A stretch of DNA of 64,000 nt from Rebecca billardiae RCC1528 (Eukaryota; Protista; Haptophyta), in contig OZ251226.1 of NCBI GenBank assembly GCA_965240325.2, forward strand, positions 2,666,001-2,730,000, written 5' to 3'. How positions within the stretch are numbered: the stretch's first letter is position 1; each line of letters opens with the position of its first letter. The notes under the pieces are model-generated. The model had not been told where the DNA came from. It searched no databases and worked only from the letters and a program-made list of their open reading frames with translations. Positions 786 through 9,752 of the stretch are shown one piece after another. A program made the position numbers and the translations under genes.

Positions 786-3700
786 ATGGCGAAGCTACAG
801 CGCATCCACTCGATGACGAAGCGGTCGATCGCAATGGGTGACACGGACATTGAGCGCGTCGCCGTCGAGCTGGAGGCCATCATGTCCGATGAGCACTTTG
901 CCGGCCACCCGGCGCTGCGCGAGTGCATGCTGCCGGGCGGCTGGCTCCCGATCGCGTCCGTGCTCAACTACACGCCGCTCGGCCGGGCCGTCTGGCCTTA
1001 CGGCGGCGTGGGCGTGGTCGGCGACTGCCTCACCACACGCGGCTCGCTCGTCGTCGAGCTGAGCGGCGACCGCATGTGCGTGCGCAGCAAGCCGCTGCGC
1101 GTGCAGCTGCGCGAGCAGCTCGAGTTTGTCTTCTCGGACACCAACTACCCGAAGGACATGCACCTGCAGCTGCTCGAGGACGCGGAGGGGTTCGCGAAGC
1201 TCGACGTCGTGTGCTCCACGTACACGCAGACGCGGATGCTCCTCAACCCCGTCCCGACCGACGCGCAGCGCGCGGTGCTCGTGCGCGAGGCGGTCGAGTC
1301 GAGCTCCGAGCTGATCTTCAAGCCGCCGTCCAAGCCGCAGGACGGGATGGGCTTCGTGCGCCGGATGACGCTGAGCGAGAAGATCCGCTCGCAGGTCGAG
1401 TTCTACCTCGAGCAGGAGCGCATGGCCTCCGACCGCTTCCTCATCGAGCAGGCGCGCGACCACGACGGGTACGTGCCGATCGCGACGATCCTCTCGTTCC
1501 CGCGCATGCGCAAGCTGGTGCACCCGCAGGTGGCGGCGGTGGCGCACGTGCTCTCCAAGTCGGCCAAGGTGGAGGTGTCGGCGGACCGCACGCTCGTCCG
1601 CCCGCGCGTCGCGCCGCCCGAGTCGCCCGCGCGCGCCAGCGTGCCCACGGGCACGGCGCGCGCGCAGGTGCTCTTAGTGCTCGAGCGGCTGCTGTCCGAT
1701 GCGTCGCTCACGCTCGACCGGCGAATGCAGGCGGCGATCGTGGCGCACTCGCCGGCGGACGCGCTGCGCAGCGGCGGGTCGGGCGTGCGCCTGCCCGTCG
1801 AGGAGGTGCTGCTGCACCCCGACGTCGCGCGCGTGCTCGGCGCCGCGGGCGCGATGGGCGACGGCGCGGCCGAGCTGCTTGGCCAGCCGCACCCGCCCGG
1901 CTCGTCGGCGGGCGCGGCCGCGGCGCTGCTGCGCAAGAAGCTGGTCGGGCTGCTGCCGCAGGTGGGCGAGTCGTCGCTGCTGTGCCTGTCGGCCGACGGC
2001 GCGTTCGTCGAGCGCCTCGTGCCCACGCCCGAGGTCCGGCAGCTCCGCTCCGCCGAGCCCGCCGGCGTGCGCGCGAGCGGCACGCCCGCGCCGCCGTCGG
2101 TGCCGCCCGACTTCAGCCTGATGACGTACAACCTACTGGCAGACATGCTGTGCACCGTCGAGCAGTTCCCCGAGGTGAACGTGGACGCGCTGGACTGGGC
2201 GCACCGGCGGCCGCTGATCGAGAAGGAGATCGTCTTCCACTCGCCCGACCTGCTCTGCGTGCAGGAGCTCCAGGGCACCGCCGAGGGCAAGGGCGAGGGC
2301 GACCACCGCGCAGAGCTCAGCGCCGCGCTCTCCGCACACGGGTACGAACACCGGTACGTGCGCAAGGTGAAGCGCGACGGCTCGAGCTGGCCGGGGCCAC
2401 AGATCGGGAACGCGATCTTCTGGCGGAGCGCGACGTTCGAGTACGTAGAGCACGAGGAGGTGCTCATCGCGCCGCTCCTCAACGGCGCGTGCGACGACGA
2501 GATCTCGCGCGCGTACTTCTGCCGCGGCGCGCAGGTCGGGCTCGTGCTGGTGCTGCGGCACCGCGCGACCGGACGGACAGTCGTCGCCGTCACGACGCAC
2601 CTCTCGTGCAACTTCCAGGAGCCGGTGACGCAGATCGCGCAGATACACCAGGTGCTCACCGTCGCGGCGGGCGTCGTCGAGCGCCACGAGGGCGCGGCCG
2701 TCGTCCTCGGCGCAGACCTCAACTCCATCCCCGGCTCCGGCTGCTACCAGCTGCTCACGGCAGGGACGCTGCACACGGCGCACCCGCACATGCACATCGT
2801 GCACTCGGACGTGCGCATGCCCTCGTTCGGCGACTACGGCGGCGACGGCGACCCGCTGTACCACCCGCTCGGCCTGCAGTCCGCGTACACACACTTGCTC
2901 GGTGCGCGCCGCCGACGCGCGTCAGCACGCCCGTCGCGCCGCGGGCCAGCGCACCCTGGCGGCGGCGCCGCGCCGCCCGCGCTGACGTGCGCCCGCCGCT
3001 CGCGCGCGCGCCCACGGCCGGCGTGGCTCCCGCAGGCCAGGAGCCGCTCTTCACCAACTTCACCGGGCCGCCGTCCAACTTCGTGGGCACGCTCGACTAC
3101 ATCATGCACAGCGCAAATACGCTCGTCGCCAAGCGCGTGCTCGAGCTGCCGTCCGAGGTGCGCCGTGCGCGGCGCTGGCCGCGGCGCCGGCGGAGCGCGC
3201 GCGCCGCGCGCCGGCCCCGGGCCCCCTCGGCGCGCGCGCTCAGCTCCTGGCCCTCGTGCGCGCGGCGCCCGGCTCCGCAGGACACGGTGCGCAAGGAGAA
3301 GTGCCTGCCGTCCTCTCGCTTCCCAAGCGACCACCTGCCGCTGCTGGCCGAGTTCACGCTGCGCGAGCTCCGCCCGGGGCGCGCCGCGCTGCCGCGGCCC
3401 ATCCAGGTGCACACGGCGCTGGCGGGCGCCGCGCCCGAGGCAGTGGACTCGCCCACACCGACCGACATGCTGGTCTCGCCAAAGCGATCGCGAGAAGGCG
3501 TGCTCATCAGCTCGGTGCGCGAGCAGGGGATGGAGACCGACGGGGCCAGCGGCACGGCGGGCGCTGCGCAACAGCTGCTGCCGCCGCCGCCGCTCCCGGC
3601 TCGCAATGGAGAGGGAGAAGGCTCGCCTGGCGACAGCAGCGGCGGCGGCAGCGCCTCAAAGGCAGGCCGCCACCACCGCGCCCGTGGAGGGCGGCGGAAT

Positions 3701-3820
3701 TCGCGCGGCGGCGCCGACGGGCCATGGCGCCAGCAGGCTGAAGCGGGGGGCGACCCAGCGTCAGCTGACGGGCGACCAAGCCCGCCACTGCCGCGGCCGC
3801 GGAGCGTCTTTCCGGATTGA
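786..3820 (+). CDS. Multi-La-motif (winged-helix RNA-binding) protein fused to a CCR4/Angel/nocturnin-type EEP nuclease/phosphatase
   Basis: join(786..2901,3036..3157,3281..3820); GT-AG introns restore LLG|QEPLFTNFT and LPSE|DTVRK. La motifs: QLEFVFSDTNYPKD, QVEFYLEQERMASDRFL...DGYVPIATILSFPRMRKL, plus two more degenerate copies. EEP motifs: MTYNLLAD, LCVQE, GADLNS, TLDYI, PSDHLPL. Confidence 0.85.
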
Positions 3821-4160: not shown

Positions 4161-4943
4161 TCATGCCTCATCAGGCTCACCATCGGCATCAGCCACTGCT
4201 GGGGCTGATGCCTCGCAGGAATCGTCCAAGGCTTCAGGGCGCGGGGTGTAGATGTACAGCCACTCGTCCGCTGGGTCGTGCGCCTGCTCCGCGGACGCCA
4301 CGGACTCGGGCACGGCGCTGCTCAGCGAGATGGTGTCCACGTCAAAGCTCTCGAGCGCGCTCGTGAAGAAGTGCATGTCGTCAAACAGCTCGCCTCGGAA
4401 CTCATAGCACACGTAGACTTTTGTGCGCGCGTGCGAGAGCTGGCGCATCGTCCAGAGCAGGGCATCGAATGTCTCCGGCGCTTGCTTGTATAGCAGCTCG
4501 CTCGCGATGATCACGTCGAAGGCGCGCGTGCCGGCGGCGTGCCGGAGCGCGCGCACGTCTTGCGCACTCCCCCACGTGCACTGGTGTGCCCTGCACACGG
4601 TCTGCAGCTGATTGCGCGAGATATTGTCCTCAACCAACGGAAGCGCATCTGGGACGTCGGTGATCCACACCTGCGTGGCGCCCAGGGCCGCGCAGATCAT
4701 TCCTGCCGCTCCGGATCCTGCTCCGAGCTCGACCACTGTGCGGCCGCGGACCTCCGCCGGACGCGCGCAGAGCCAGCGGCCAAAGGTGAGGGTGGCGGGC
4801 CAGACCTTCAGATTGGTGCCGTCTGCCGTGCGCCTGGTGGCGGCGCCAGCCTGTGGACGCTGCTCGAGCTCGAGCTCGACACCGCTCGCGGCATCTGCGA
4901 ATGAGATGCACGCGTCCTCGTGCGCCTTCCACGTCCGCAGCAT
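4161..4943 (-). CDS. METTL21/Methyltransf_16-family protein-lysine methyltransferase
   Basis: GTNLKVWPA, VVELGAGSG (SAM motif I), ITD, W-G, FDVIIASELLY (DxxY-like). First ATG at 4943. Confidence 0.85.
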   Translation of the reverse strand: MLRTWKAHEDACISFADAASGVELELEQRPQAGAATRRTADGTNLKVWPATLTFGRWLCARPAEVRGRTVVELGAGSGAAGMICAALGATQVWITDVPDALPLVEDNISRNQLQTVCRAHQCTWGSAQDVRALRHAAGTRAFDVIIASELLYKQAPETFDALLWTMRQLSHARTKVYVCYEFRGELFDDMHFFTSALESFDVDTISLSSAVPESVASAEQAHDPADEWLYIYTPRPEALDDSCEASAPAVADADGEPDEA

Positions 4944-5387
4944 GGCGCCCAACGGCGCCTGATCGGAAAAGGTGGATGCCCACGGTGGATCTCAAGCCGT
5001 GGAGATCGCAACGTCGGCAACGACCTTTTACTTGGCCAACGATGATGTTGAGTGAGGTCACATGAATACTGGGCTGGTTTCTGGGTATCTAAAGTCATAT
5101 GGCGAAAAGCTGTTCGTAACGAACAATTGCGCCGGACTTCCAAACCTCGTCGGCCAAGACTCTGATTTGCTGCCGTCACCGTCACAGGTCGCTGGTCGGG
5201 CAGGAAGGCGCCAACCTGAGGCGGGCGTCACAAGGCGAAAGGCCACTCGGAGGACGAGCCCTCCTCGGCGCGGGGCTGGTGAAGGCGCAGCCCGCGGCGC
5301 GTGCGGGTGAGGAGGCGCTCGACGCGGCGGATCTGAGCCCTACCCCGACGCCAGCCGCGCTTAGCCACCGCCTGCCCCACCACCACC

Positions 5388-7134
5388 ATGGAGGTCATCT
5401 GCCACACGGAGCACGCTCACATCTCGACTGACGCGCAGCAGCTTCTCGTCGTGGCTGAGCTGACTCCCCACGCGCTGAGTGCGGCTGGGCTCGACGCGCG
5501 CTCAGTTGCAGCCGAGCTGCGGCCCGAGGCCCCGCCAAGCGGCGACGAGCACACATCGGCATCGCCACCGCCCATGCGCGCGTCATCTCGCTCGGGCTCA
5601 CCCGATCGCGCCGAAGCGTCTCCGCGGCCTGCCGCCGCCGGTGATGAGGCGCGCGCGCCCTCCCCGAGAGCTCCGCCGCCGGGGGAGGCACCGCCACCGA
5701 CCTCCCACCCGTCCCAAGACGCCTGCCTGCTCGAGCAGTGCGGCCTGGGCTGGCGCGTGCGCAGCCCGCACCCGAGGCGCAGCCCGTGGACGGTGGTCGC
5801 GCAGCGCGTGCGCCTCTCGGTCGAGGTGTCGGACGGCGTGCAGGTCGAGCGCATCTGGAATGTCCGGTGCGTGGCACGGCTCCCGGCCGCGCATGCGCGC
5901 GCGCGCGCGCACGCGCCCCTCCCCGCCCCGCCGCCCATCCGCACGCCCGGGCAGCGCGCGCCCCCCGTGCTGCCGCGCCGCCCGTGCCGCCTGCGCCGCC
6001 TGCGCCGCCTCGCGCGCCCGCCTCGCGCACGCGCACGCGCATCCTCCCCGCGTGGGCCCGCCGCCACGCCTGCTCACCGCCGCGTACGTGCGCGCGCGTG
6101 CCCCGCCCACGCGCCCCCCGCGCGCGCGTCGCTCCCGCGCGCAGCGCCGGCCAAGCGGTGCCGAGTGCGTGCGCGCCCTCGGCGCCGTGCGAGGCTTCGC
6201 TCGACGACGTGCACGGCGGCGCCAGCCTGCGCGTGCCGATCCTGCTGCAGCTCGCGGCGGTGCAGCCGCCGACGCCGCCGGCCGAAGACCCGAGCATGCA
6301 CCCGCCCAACGGCGGCGCGGAGCGCGGCGGCGCGTCCGACGAGGCGGGCCCGCCGCTGCTCAGCGTGACCGTGCGCGTGCACTACTTTGACGCGGTCGGC
6401 ACGTGCGCCGCCGACTGCGAGGCGGAGGTGCAGGTGCAGCGGCTGCCGCACGCGCAGCTCGGCGCGCGGCAGCGCGAGCACGCGCGCGAGGCCGGCGCGG
6501 CCGCCGCGCACAGCGCCGCGCTCGTCCACGCCGAGCGCGCGCGTCTCAGCTCGGAGGATGGCCTCGAGCGCGCCGCGGCCGAGGCGAACGCTGCAAACCT
6601 GCCGGGCGCGCGCGCGATCCTGCTGGCGGTGCTCGAGCGGCTGGGCGAGCACTCGCGCGGGGGCGAGGCCGAGGCGGCGGCGGCGCACGCGCTCGCGGCC
6701 GCCGTGCGCGCGAGCCTCGCGCGGCTGCGCCCGCACGACGCGCGCGACGGCGCGGTGAGGCACGCGGGCCCGGCAACCGCCGCGCCGTGCTCTGACAAGG
6801 ATCGAGAGAGGGAGGTGCTGTCTGCCGGCGCGCTCGACGTGCGCCCGTCCGCCGGGCTGACGGGGGGCAGCCTCACGCCGCCGCCCGCGAGCGCGGCCTT
6901 TGGCAACGGCGCCGCCAGCCCCGAGCTCGCGACCCTCGGCTCGGCCGCTCTCAGCGGGGGCGCCCTGCTTGGGCGGCAGGGCGGCGCGCACGTGTCGCCG
7001 CCCGCGCAGGGCCACGGCTTTGACCTGCGCGCGCCGCTCAAGCCGCGCACGTTCTCGCTGCCCTCGTTCGGGGCGACCTCGCCCGGCGCGGCCGGCAGCG
7101 GCGGCAGCGGCAGCGCCGGCGGCGCCGCCGCCGC

Positions 7135-7166
<32 letters not shown>

Positions 7167-9752
7167 CGGCCGGCGGCCCCAAGTCTCATGGCGGTACGGA
7201 GGGCGGCGGCAGCGCGGCGAGCAGCCTCGCCGGCGTCTTCGGCCTGAGCGCCTTCGACGGCGGCGCGCGTGCGGCGGGCGCCGACCGAGGCGCGGACGGC
7301 GCAGGCCAGCTGGGCGTCGCGGGCGCCGCGCTCGGCGTGGGCCGCGGCCTCGCGGGCGGCGGCGGCGGCGGCGCGTCGGGCAGCGCCGCCAGCCTCACTC
7401 GGCAGTGGCAGTGGCGCCGGCGCTCCGTGCCGCGCGACGCGGGCGAGCAGCCGCGCTCCTCCCTCGGCGCGCCGATGCTCGGCCTCGCGCGCGGCCTCAC
7501 CGTCACCGGCTCCGCGGGCGGCGGCGCCGGCGGGCCCGCCGCCGCGCACGCCCACGCGGAGGGCCTCCCGGTCGACGGGCTCGAGGGGTTGGGTGTGGGC
7601 GGCCATGGGCACGCGCCCGCGCCTCCGCTCGCACTCGGGCCGAGGCTGACGTCCTCCGCGTCGCTGCGGCTGCTGCGCGGGCGCGGGCGCGGCCCGCCGC
7701 CGCTGCTGATGCCGCTGCACACCGCGCAGGCGCACGCCGCCTCGCTGCCGCCGGGCGCGGCCGGGCCCTCCGCGGTGGGCGGCCTGGCCATCACGCAGCC
7801 GCTGCCGCCGATGGGCGGCGGGGGGCTGACAGGCACCTCGGCATCGCGCGCGCCGACGCCGGGCAAGCCCTCCCTCGAGGAGTGGCTGTGCCGGCTGCTC
7901 CGCCGCCCCGTGCCCGCCTCGCTGCCCGACGACGTCGTGTGGCACATCCTCTCCTTCCTGCAGCCCGCGCACGCCTTCTCCGAGGCGCTCGCCTCGCCCA
8001 CGCACATTGTCGACCGCGCGGCGAGCGTGCGCGGCACCTTCACGACCATCTCTGCGGCGCTGCGCGCGGCGAGCCACGGGGACCGGATCATCGTGCGGCC
8101 GGGGATCTACCGCGAGAGCCTGCGCGTCGACGTGTGCGTGGCGATCATCGCGATGAACGGCGCGGGCGTCTCCGTCGGCGCGGGCGCGGGCGCGGCGGCG
8201 CCGGGCGCGAGCGGCGGCGCCGTGCTCACCAGCGCGCGCAACCACACGCTGCAGTGCACCGCGCCGCTCGCGCGGGTCGAGGGGATGACGCTGCGCCAGA
8301 CGGGCTCGTCGGGCCGCTCGTGCGTGCTCACGCCGCGCGGGCAGCTCGAGGTGTGCGCGTGCGACGTGAGCTCCGCCTCCGGCCTGTGCGTCGAGGTGAC
8401 GGACCGCGCACTCCCCACGATCCGCTACTCGCGCGTGCACGACGGCGCGGCCGCCGGCCTTTGGTTCCGCACCGGCAGCGGCGGCATCGTCGACGGCAAC
8501 GAGATCATGGGCAACGGCTGGTCGGGCGTGCAGATCTCGGAGGGGTCGAACCCGACGCTCGTGCGCAACTTCATCCACGACAACAAGTCCGCCGGCGTGA
8601 TCTCCTTCAACGGCGGCCGCGGCGTCGCCACGCACAACGACATCTCGACCAACGGCAAGGGCGGTGTGCAGGTGCGCTCGGGCGCGTCGCCCGAGCTGCG
8701 CACCAACCGCATCTTTGACGAGCGCTCGTTCGGGATCTGGGTGTACGAGCGCGGGCTCGGGCACTTCGAGGACAACGAGATCGTCGACAACGCGTGGAGC
8801 GGCTTCCAGGTGGAGGAGGGCTCCGCGCCGACGGTGATTGCGAACCGGCTGAGCGGCAACCGCAGCGCCGGCATCGTCGTCTACAACCGCGGCTCCGGTG
8901 CGCGCCGCGCCGCGCCGCGCCGCGCCGCGCCGCGCCGTGCGCGCGCGGACGGAGGGCACGCGGCGGGCGCGCGCCCGTCACGCCAGGCCCGTGGCTCACG
9001 CCCGCGCGCCCGCGCGCCCGTGCGCCACCGCCCCCGTGCGGCGCAGGCGTGTACGAGTGGAACGACATCAGCGCCAACGGCCGCTGCGGCGTTCAGATCA
9101 AGAGCGGCAGGTGAGCGCGGCGCGGCGCGGCGCGGCGCGGCGCTGCAGACGCGGACGCGGACGCGCGCGCGCCGGACGCCGGTGGGCTCGGTGGCGGCGG
9201 CGGGCGCGCGCTCTCTCGCCCACTCGCGCCGGCCCGCCCGCGCTTCCCGCCGCCCCCGCCCCGCTCGCCCCGCGCAGCGCGCCGTGCTTCCGGTACAACC
9301 GCATCCACCACGAGAAGCAGGCGGGCGTTCTCACGGCTGAGGACGGCACGGGCACGCTCGAGGACAACGACATCTTCGACAACCAGTGGTCGGGCGTGCA
9401 GACGGAGGGGCCGTCGGACCCGCTGCTGCGGCGCAACCGCATCCACCACAACGGCGGCGCCGGCTTCATCGCGTACCAGAACGGCTCGGGCCGCCTCGAG
9501 CGCAACCACATCTACGACAACAAGAAGTACGGCGTGCAGTCAAAGACGGGCGGCCACCCGACCGTGCGCGCCAACCGGATCCACGACAAGACGTACGGCA
9601 TCTACCTCACAGAGTCGGGCGCGGGCGTGTTCGAGAACAACACGATCCACTCGCTCGGCGCGGCACGGCAGGGCGGCGGCGGCGGCGCCGGCGCAGGGAT
9701 CTACGTCTCGGCCGACTGCAGCCCCGTGCTCAACAACAACGAGGGCGCATGA
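5388..9752 (+). CDS. FBXO11/FBXO10-like F-box protein with right-handed parallel beta-helix (CASH) repeats and a long N-terminal extension
   Basis: join(5388..5866,6145..8897,9047..9110,9278..9752). F-box-like SLPDDVVWHILSFL; FTTISAALRAASHGDRIIVRPGIYRE; many NxIxxNxxxGV/I repeats. The first exon structure is less certain. Confidence 0.75.
7139..7165 (+). repeat. (GGC)9 coding trinucleotide repeat (poly-Gly)
   Basis: Direct read; encodes GGGGGGGGG in the low-complexity linker. Confidence 0.9.

Follow-up and report, generated by a model that had tools for sequence, protein, structure and literature searches.

The locus examined here, close to the start of a 64,000-nucleotide window of the Rebecca billardiae genome, raises the question of whether a single protein couples several La motifs to an EEP nuclease and, if so, what kind of enzyme this is. 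The initial annotation had proposed such a fusion, and the gene structure bears it out, in a single reading frame that is conserved in orthologues (Table 1). Exon 1, which covers residues 1-705 and the first base of codon 706, by itself contains every La module and some 80% of the EEP domain, as judged from the open reading frame (ORF) and Pfam, and its start codon is supported by the alignment of the N terminus with the 'ALTRIHSIL' start of the orthologues. When intron 1 is spliced out, the junction reads LLGQEPLFTNFT, a sequence contiguous in all orthologues, and removal of intron 2 gives LPSEDTVRKE, the same as in the orthologues. Splicing of both introns restores the LDY and SDH motifs of the nuclease, and the 925-residue product contains 0 internal stops. 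It was aligned with a transcriptome-derived protein from Haptolina ericina (P0002) in a single HSP (residues 4-775, 53.6% identity), free of gaps at both exon junctions. Pfam gave no match on the unspliced C-terminal stretch because intron 2 breaks up the EEP domain. The database entry P0001 (1025 aa) is an ORF prediction that treats intron 1 as coding, and its C terminus is false. A gene-fusion artefact was also considered and can be ruled out: no stop breaks the ORF that runs through the La modules into the EEP domain, and independent transcriptomes show the same fusion, which is present as one ORF in transcriptome-derived sequences from Haptolina (P0002), Acanthoeca (P0025, 'type:complete'), Phalansterium (P0118) and MMETSP (P0295).

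Table 1. Features of the La-CCR4 gene, in positions of the window.
Feature	Position	Strand	Residues	Remarks
La-CCR4 gene	786-2901, 3036-3157, 3281-3820	+	925 aa	three exons
Exon 1	786-2901	+		start codon, four La modules, linker, first ~265 EEP residues; continuous ORF
La module M1	834-1094	+	17-103	degenerate; hhalign to M3
La module M2	1095-1364	+	104-193	pocket partly intact (Q F V D H Y); Pfam La
La module M3	1368-1625	+	195-280	canonical; Pfam La
La module M4	1653-2021	+	290-412	La fold; AlphaFold model and Foldseek
EEP (CCR4-type) nuclease	2106-3367	+	441-775	spans both introns; Pfam PF03372
Catalytic codons	2130-2132, 2226-2228, 2595-2597, 2715-2717	+	N449, E481, H604, D644	
Catalytic codons	2721-2723, 3080-3082, 3095-3097, 3332-3334	+	N646, F721, D726, H764	
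Intron 1	2902-3035	+		134 nt, GT-AG, phase 1; GT donor 2902-2903
Exon 2	3036-3157	+	706-746	TNFT...FVGTLDY motif
Intron 2	3158-3280	+		123 nt, GT-AG, in frame, without a stop
Exon 3	3281-3820	+		EEP end (PSDH), 150-aa low-complexity tail, stop TGA 3818-3820

As for the N-terminal region, four La folds are present, each module directly abutting the next, and the full canonical 3'-end pocket is found in M3 only. M3 matched the Pfam La profile with 60.5 bits, and its residues Q203, F206, Y207, D216, F218 and F238 correspond in a phmmer alignment to Q20, Y23, Y24, D33, F35 and F55 of human La, so that all six pocket positions (6/6) are kept, including the equivalents of LARP1 Q333, Y336 and F348. 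Superposition of M3 on La N-terminal domains gave Z scores of 13.0 and 12.7 (rmsd 2.0-2.1 Å), and all aligned orthologues of the haptophyte type share D216 and F218. M2 also matched Pfam La (31.6 bits, E 1.5e-7), falling under the gathering score when scanned alone, and its model (residues 102-196) was superposed on the La motif of Schizosaccharomyces pombe Slr1 with a Z score of 12.6 (rmsd 1.6 Å, 86 residues). A Pfam scan of M1 gave no match. hhalign nevertheless aligned it with M3 at 97.5% probability (E 8e-12), its model has the La-type order of helices and strands, its pocket positions read E A I H A Y, and it carries a strongly conserved motif, VWP(F/Y)GGVGVV(A/G)DC. A sequence search with M4 likewise found no match, and this module was recognized by its AlphaFold model (pLDDT 87.8), for which the top 27 Foldseek matches in the PDB were all La motifs (probability 0.93-1.00, TM by query 0.57-0.67). 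M4 retains only the D33 equivalent of the pocket, contains a low-complexity insert of ~30 residues and is missing from some haptophyte-type orthologues in the alignment (P0008, P0009). In the R. billardiae protein it is this degenerate module, and not M3, that adjoins the nuclease. The initial annotation had counted three clear La motifs and one degenerate one; four folds are indeed there, but by sequence only M3 is clear, M2 being sub-threshold, M1 visible to profiles only and M4 to fold comparison only. Its statement that no La motif is followed by an RRM was correct, as none was found by Pfam or in the structural model of the protein.

The EEP domain is complete, as had been claimed. Its motifs YNLLA (N449), QE (E481), THL (H604), DLNS (D644/N646), LDY (D726) and SDH (H764) are all present, and in an alignment with human CNOT6L these residues correspond to N195, E240, H360, D410/N412, D489 and H529. 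In the family, the catalytic N/E/H/D/N/D/H residues and the equivalent of CNOT6L F484 occupy invariant or near-invariant columns. A loop that reads HWDP in genuine CCR4 reads SCNF here; it is the site of CNOT6L Pro365, which we take to be part of the adenine pocket, and specificity for poly(A) can thus not be assumed. The LRR through which CCR4 binds CAF1 had been reported absent, and Pfam indeed detected none, the N terminus being filled by the four La folds.

We then asked which EEP group the nuclease belongs to. An EEP profile of the family scored highest against yeast Ccr4 (244.9 bits), followed by CNOT6L (206 bits), PDE12 (197 bits), nocturnin (167 bits) and ANGEL2 (162 bits), and a single-sequence search with P0002 returned the same order (Ccr4 79, nocturnin 50 and ANGEL2 41 bits). 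By structure (VIA-align), ANGEL2 (Z 21.1) and nocturnin (Z 17.9) stand behind CNOT6L (Z 24.2) and PDE12, ANGEL2 being tied with full-length CNOT6 (Z 20.7). A phmmer search had ranked ANGEL2 first (37.9 bits), but it had used the C-terminally truncated product of exon 1, and the complete domains overturned that rank. Profile, sequence and structure agree in placing genuine CCR4 (yeast Ccr4, CNOT6L) nearest to the nuclease, and not ANGEL2 or nocturnin. Of the earlier label 'CCR4/Angel-type', the first half stands and the second does not. The same order of profile scores bears on the suggestion that the enzyme 'trims or heals' 3' ends: a CCR4-like rather than Angel-like nuclease favours trimming and disfavours healing of 2',3'-cyclic phosphates. 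In a tree of EEP domains that contained no nocturnin or PDE12 sequences, with SH-aLRT support taken from a quick search, all La-bearing proteins formed one clade (SH-aLRT 99) on a long stem (length 0.5), which was apart from, and not nested in, the clades of LRR-CCR4 and zf-C6H2-CCR4. With the root placed on plant 'CCR4 homolog 3', an ANGEL2-like protein, the La clade grouped with the LRR and zf-C6H2 clades of CCR4, and the tree gave no clear order of branching among the three. Some members of the La clade (P0077, P0087, P0114, P0142) have long N termini in which no La motif was detectable.

Among haptophytes, Haptolina, Prymnesium and Emiliania have orthologues, and more distant members are found in the choanoflagellate Acanthoeca, the amoebozoan Phalansterium (P0118, whose La match in Pfam is sub-threshold at 29.2 bits) and the dinoflagellate Symbiodinium. 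Many further members come from marine metatranscriptome contigs, among them contigs of ~2 kb with a single ORF each. La-CCR4, whose fusion is conserved in several supergroups, is thus a lineage-rich, overlooked family and not a one-off. Databases label its members automatically as "Ccr4" or "HTH La-type". A search of the ESM Atlas by features and shape gave clusters with EEP only and with LRR, Angel and PDE12 architectures, and no La+EEP cluster of at least 50 members; a word-indexed protein search with a mixed alignment, in which the candidates were saturated by low-complexity words, returned 4 matches. Our literature search found no paper describing a La-CCR4 family, and it is absent from the main LARP survey even though Emiliania huxleyi was sampled there (Deragon 2020). 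The claim of novelty therefore holds in that no published description was found, and has to be qualified in that the architecture is widespread, reaching several protist groups, and its members are already auto-annotated.

Among characterized proteins, genuine CCR4s (yeast Ccr4, CNOT6/CNOT6L and plant CCR4a/b) share with La-CCR4 the EEP fold, all of the catalytic residues and the counterparts of CNOT6L N412 and F484. Animal and fungal CCR4s carry an LRR as their adaptor, and plant CCR4s a zf-C6H2 finger. La-CCR4 resembles plant CCR4a/b in that a C-terminal nuclease follows a lineage-specific N-terminal module, but it differs from all genuine CCR4s in having four La motifs in place of either adaptor, in the substituted HWDP loop and in its separate EEP clade. 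With LARP1 it has in common a canonical La motif (here M3) with no RRM behind it. It departs from the LARP superfamily in the tandem arrangement of La motifs, three of them degenerate, in their fusion to a nuclease, and in the absence of DM15, PAM2, xRRM or LSA signatures. Among the five described LARP families (La, LARP1, LARP4, LARP6 and LARP7), none is singled out by the M3 profile, whose scores are about equal for La (64.7 bits), LARP7 (62.9 bits) and LARP6 (62.8 bits), ahead of LARP4 (47-50 bits) and LARP1 (42-48 bits). ANGEL1/2, nocturnin and PDE12 have the same catalytic core and likewise lack an LRR, but they are less similar than genuine CCR4 and have no La motifs. Judged by analogy, the nearest studied counterpart appears to be Trypanosoma brucei LCCR4 (Tb927.4.2430), an LRR-less CCR4 homologue that stands outside CAF1-NOT, has no deadenylase activity and removes the CCA ends of tRNAs (PMC7897491, PMC2425496). 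Both are protist CCR4-like EEP enzymes without an LRR, and LCCR4 itself acts on RNA 3' ends outside CAF1-NOT. The two differ, as far as the published description of LCCR4 goes, in that no La motif is reported for it and that its substrate is tRNA CCA. Its terminal peptides, deduced from published primers, gave no match among the proteins we collected.

Taking these results together, we propose, with a probability of roughly 60%, that La-CCR4 is an old, undescribed eukaryotic family of self-targeted 3'-5' exoribonucleases acting outside CCR4-NOT. The enzyme would be a Mg2+-dependent CCR4-type exoribonuclease in which an array of La-motif winged helices replaces the usual adaptor domain. M3 would capture single-stranded RNA 3'-OH ends, so that substrates reach the nuclease without CAF1/NOT; a precedent is LARP1, whose lone La motif binds the 3' ends of poly(A) (PMC9458460). 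The degenerate but conserved M1, M2 and M4 may serve as a scaffold or offer surfaces for the body of the RNA or for protein partners. Since a given 3' end can lie in the pocket or in the active site, but not in both at once, the La motif most likely acts either by capture and hand-over or as an end-point sensor, which would retake the end as soon as a terminal sequence that it prefers becomes exposed. Concerning the substrate, our estimate is about 45% for oligo/poly(A) tails, about 30% for Pol III/tRNA-type 3' ends and about 25% for others. Pointing toward poly(A), one family member (P0051) additionally has CCCH fingers of the Nab2 type, which belong to a domain type with known affinity for poly(A); pointing away from it, the M3 profile is nearer to La, LARP7 and LARP6 (about 63-65 bits) than to LARP1 and LARP4 (about 42-50 bits).

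The nearness of the nuclease to genuine CCR4 by all three measures is also consistent with an ordinary CCR4 subunit of CCR4-NOT, in which the La array would dock on CAF1 in the place of the LRR and the enzyme would work as a general mRNA deadenylase. Plant CCR4a/b have already swapped the LRR for zf-C6H2, a separate canonical CCR4 is not established for haptophytes, and the conservation of M1, M2 and M4 despite lost RNA-pocket residues resembles that of a protein-binding surface. We nevertheless consider this explanation unlikely, in view of the separate, long-stemmed position of the La clade outside the LRR and zf-C6H2 clades and of the full RNA 3'-end pocket retained in M3. Moreover, an LRR-CCR4 (P0249) whose record has the style of the Acanthoeca records stands beside the La-CCR4 of Acanthoeca, suggesting that the two coexist as paralogues, with the species matched by record style only.

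Slightly more doubtful still is the idea that La-CCR4 corresponds to trypanosome LCCR4, as its orthologue or its analogue, the La motifs of La-CCR4 reading tRNA or UUU-OH ends and its nuclease trimming, upon stress, the CCA of tRNAs or other Pol III ends. Pol III 3' ends are the classical ligands of La motifs, and the top score of the M3 profile is indeed on genuine La. LCCR4 is, moreover, an LRR-less Ccr4 homologue outside CAF1-NOT with conserved catalytic residues, and the numbering of its active-site residue Asn454 points to an N-terminal region of ~240 uncharacterised residues. Neither of the LCCR4 papers, however, mentions a La motif (PMC7897491, PMC2425496), and the Nab2-type fingers of P0051 suggest poly(A) instead. 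A non-nuclease function, as an ANGEL-type 2',3'-cyclic phosphatase that heals ends or a nocturnin-type NADP(H) phosphatase that hydrolyses a small-molecule phosphate, would fit the same catalytic residues, which are common to all these enzymes, and the first rank of ANGEL2 with the truncated product. We regard it as very improbable: the complete domains placed ANGEL2 and nocturnin last by profile and by sequence and behind CNOT6L by structure, and in the tree rooted on plant 'CCR4 homolog 3' the La clade sits with the clades of CCR4. Our preferred reading remains a self-targeted exoribonuclease outside CCR4-NOT.

CCR4 nucleases and La-related proteins rank among the most thoroughly studied families at RNA 3' ends, and in known systems they oppose each other, tails being protected by LARP1 and LARP4 and removed by CCR4. 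A conserved protein that naturally joins both families would show how 3'-end recognition can be coupled directly to trimming without the CCR4-NOT scaffold. La-CCR4 would also add a class, missing from model organisms, to both the CCR4 and the LARP classifications, and it offers a possible explanation of how CCR4 homologues without an LRR, trypanosome LCCR4 among them, locate their substrates. A broader version, which we offer as a tentative possibility, would make La-CCR4 a third ancient CCR4 class and at the same time a sixth LARP family, dating from early eukaryotes and lost in animals, fungi and plants. The enzyme would act alone, its La motif reading the 3'-terminal nucleotides and gating the nuclease so that trimming stops at a defined end-point, and LCCR4 would be a divergent member. 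If this were true, a whole family would have a role in reversible translation shutdown or in RNA 3'-end quality control.

Behind the nuclease, the protein ends in the RGG-like tail that the initial annotation had described (residues 776-925). Its 150 residues are rich in Gly, Pro, Ala and Arg, include two RGG and contain SPKRSR and RARGGRRNSRGG, and the orthologues likewise end in SPKR and Arg/Gly-rich sequences.

The region encoding the La-CCR4 fusion has a GC content of 66-78%, and nearly all reading frames are open. In frame 3, an ORF starting at ATG 786 encodes a product with Pfam matches to La (PF05383, 85.3 bits over two stretches) and Exo_endo_phos (PF03372) in a single unbroken frame. 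Past '...AYTHLLG', homology switches from frame 3 to frame 2, where 'QEPLFTNFT...GTLDY' and later '...PSDHLPLLAEF' are encoded. Two GT-AG introns were found in the DNA sequence, and the spliced CDS, with zero internal stops, encodes a protein of 925 aa. La motifs and an EEP nuclease thus belong to one gene, as the initial annotation had claimed. The protein aligned with its relative from Haptolina ericina (P0002) in one HSP (aa 4-775, 53.6% identity) with both exon junctions free of gaps, and its start agrees with the conserved N-terminus of the orthologues. A public ORF call for the same locus (P0001, 1025 aa) is translated in frame through intron 1; its C-terminus is false, an Arg/Ala-rich stretch replacing the LDY and SDH motifs.

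Positions of the La-CCR4 gene, its introns and neighbouring ORFs in the window
Feature	Position	Strand	Remark
Spliced CDS, La-CCR4	786-2901, 3036-3157, 3281-3820	+	925 aa
Intron 1	2902-3035	+	GT-AG
Intron 2	3158-3280	+	GT-AG
Downstream neighbour	4161-4952	-	263-aa ORF
Long ORF	5738-9340	+	about 79-84% GC

The nuclease had been described as 'CCR4/Angel-type'. When 21 EEP domains from the family were combined in a profile (A3) and scored against PDB, yeast Ccr4 ranked first (244.9 bits), followed by CNOT6L (206 bits), CNOT6 (203 bits), PDE12 (197 bits), nocturnin (167 bits) and ANGEL2 (162 bits). The complete Haptolina EEP domain alone gave a similar ranking, with CNOT6L (79.4) above yeast Ccr4 (70.6) and ANGEL2 last (41.4). 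Structural alignment of the model of this protein placed CNOT6L (Z 24.2) before PDE12 (22.8), ANGEL2 (21.1) and nocturnin (17.9). ANGEL2 had appeared as the top match with the C-terminally truncated exon-1 product, a result superseded by the complete-domain rankings. Sequence profiles and models therefore point to a CCR4-like rather than an Angel-like nuclease; the CCR4 half of the description stood and the Angel half did not, and an Angel- or nocturnin-type phosphatase is unlikely. The catalytic set was complete as stated, every catalytic residue and the equivalent of CNOT6L F484 occupying invariant or near-invariant columns of the family alignment. The family carries 'SCNF' where genuine CCR4 has the 'HWDP' loop with Pro365 of the adenine pocket.

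The phylogeny of 105 EEP domains (IQ-TREE, LG+C20+F+G4 by PMSF, quick search) was rooted on the plant, ANGEL2-like 'CCR4 homolog 3', with nocturnin and PDE12 sequences left out. All La-bearing rows lay within a single clade (66 rows, stem 0.49, SH-aLRT 99), separate from the LRR-CCR4 group and the zf-C6H2 CCR4 clade (support 98). In an 80-row tree with Pfam-informed labels, one change explained the La label (support 99), and likewise one change the zf-C6H2 label. Unlabelled rows within the La clade were mostly N-terminally truncated fragments; in a few full-length proteins of the clade no La motif was detected.

Three clear La motifs and a degenerate one had been proposed. In a module-by-module Pfam scan, PF05383 matched M3 (aa 195-280, 60.5 bits) and, below the gathering score, M2 (aa 104-193, 31.6 bits, E 1.5e-7); neither M1 (aa 17-103) nor M4 (aa 290-412) was matched. 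Profile-profile comparison of orthologue alignments related M1 (97.5% probability, E 8e-12) and M2 (63% probability) to M3, and did not detect M4. Modelled with AlphaFold (pLDDT 73.7), the exon-1 product repeated the La-type helix/strand order four times and, as noted before, contained no RRM between the modules. Superposition of M3 from this model with La N-terminal domains gave Z 13.0 and 12.7 at an rmsd of about 2 A; for M2 and the La motif of Slr1, Z was 12.6 and rmsd 1.6 A. M4 was modelled separately, using residues 300-406 of Haptolina P0002, a sequence without the insert of about 30 aa in the window gene; in this model (pLDDT 87.8), the first 27 Foldseek PDB matches were all La motifs (27/27). 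The number of La folds was thus correct, and the count of clear motifs was not. A tRNA 2'-phosphotransferase was a weak Foldseek match of the M4 model.

The La residues Q20, Y23, Y24, D33, F35 and F55 correspond to Q203, F206, Y207, D216, F218 and F238 in M3 (phmmer alignment with human La). The same positions are Q F V D H Y in M2 and E A I H A Y in M1 (hhalign alignments). M4 retains the pocket Asp only, as read by eye from the alignment covering this module (A4), hhalign giving no reliable M4-M3 alignment. Alignments and models together indicate four La folds and a canonical 3'-end pocket in M3 only. M1 is strongly conserved despite its lost pocket, with the motif VWPFGGVGVVADC.

A word-indexed search returned 19 relatives, including proteins of Haptolina ericina, Prymnesium parvum and Emiliania huxleyi (EMIHUDRAFT_449888). 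Precomputed PF03372 and PF05383 were present in 14 of them; the other five, shorter (416-521 aa), had PF05383 alone. An exhaustive profile search of 1.84 billion representatives gave 9688 matches at E <= 0.001, of which 322 reached E <= 1e-30, and the first ten scanned (643-1158 aa) all had one to three La motifs and a C-terminal EEP domain. Beyond haptophytes, members came from the choanoflagellate Acanthoeca spectabilis (P0025), the amoebozoan Phalansterium solitarium (P0118, La 29.2 bits) and the dinoflagellate Symbiodinium sp. KB8, whose 'CCR4' (P0296) belongs to the cluster of P0120; another member is an MMETSP transcript (P0295). The family is widespread and not unique. Several members carry the JGI label 'mRNA deadenylase... 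Ccr4'. The triple array M1-M2-M3 looks ancestral, because Acanthoeca keeps this order with a module-specific best match for each module; M4 is restricted to part of the haptophyte-type orthologues. The two longest variants, P0120 and P0134, are about 1500 aa long. Some 1000 uncharacterised residues of P0120 separate a La match near the N-terminus, sub-threshold at 34 bits, from a far C-terminal EEP domain; in P0134 the La match (aa 480-528) is weaker still (21 bits). A weak match to the Tpt1/KptA RNA 2'-phosphotransferase family (27.7 bits) within a La-like module of another relative (P0047, aa 27-58) probably reflects likeness between winged-helix folds.

A survey of 345 LARPs sampled Hacrobia including E. 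huxleyi and described an oddity, the atypical La+DUF3223 protein of alveolates, and no La+EEP protein (PMC7928011). Literature on La combined with CCR4, Angel, nocturnin, EEP or the Pfam accessions likewise yielded no description of one, in agreement with the initial annotation, which knew of no such LARP family. La-CCR4 is a new variant combining known kinds of protein, the La motif and the CCR4 nuclease, seen in databases and undescribed in the literature as far as searched.

From this domain anatomy we infer a CCR4-type exonuclease with a built-in 3'-end reader, M3. With a reader of its own, the enzyme would not need CAF1/NOT for targeting. The La pocket and the nuclease site would vie for one RNA 3' end, so that capture-and-hand-over or end-point sensing would be likely. 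Candidate substrates are 3' ends of two sorts, poly(A)/oligo(A) and Pol III/tRNA. An environmental relative (P0051, 1158 aa) has CCCH zinc fingers, some of them Nab2-type, N-terminal to La and EEP, which hint at poly(A)-related substrates. One main rival takes La-CCR4 as a CCR4-NOT subunit docked through the La array, which would agree with the CCR4-like nuclease. Another main rival, a tRNA trimmer, is modelled on the nearest studied protein, Trypanosoma brucei LCCR4, which is LRR-less and lies outside CAF1-NOT; it lacks deadenylase activity and, under starvation, trims the CCA ends of tRNAs (PMC2425496, PMC7897491). The papers on LCCR4 never mention a La motif (PMC2425496, PMC7897491), and the likeness, drawn from published description and not from sequence, makes kinship only a lead.

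As for the neighbouring genes, the 263-aa ORF downstream of La-CCR4 matches Methyltransf_16, a lysine methyltransferase domain, at 79.3 bits. The later part of the long ORF (translated from 7502-8800) encodes right-handed beta-helix repeats (PF13229, 75.5 bits) with a NosD-like match.
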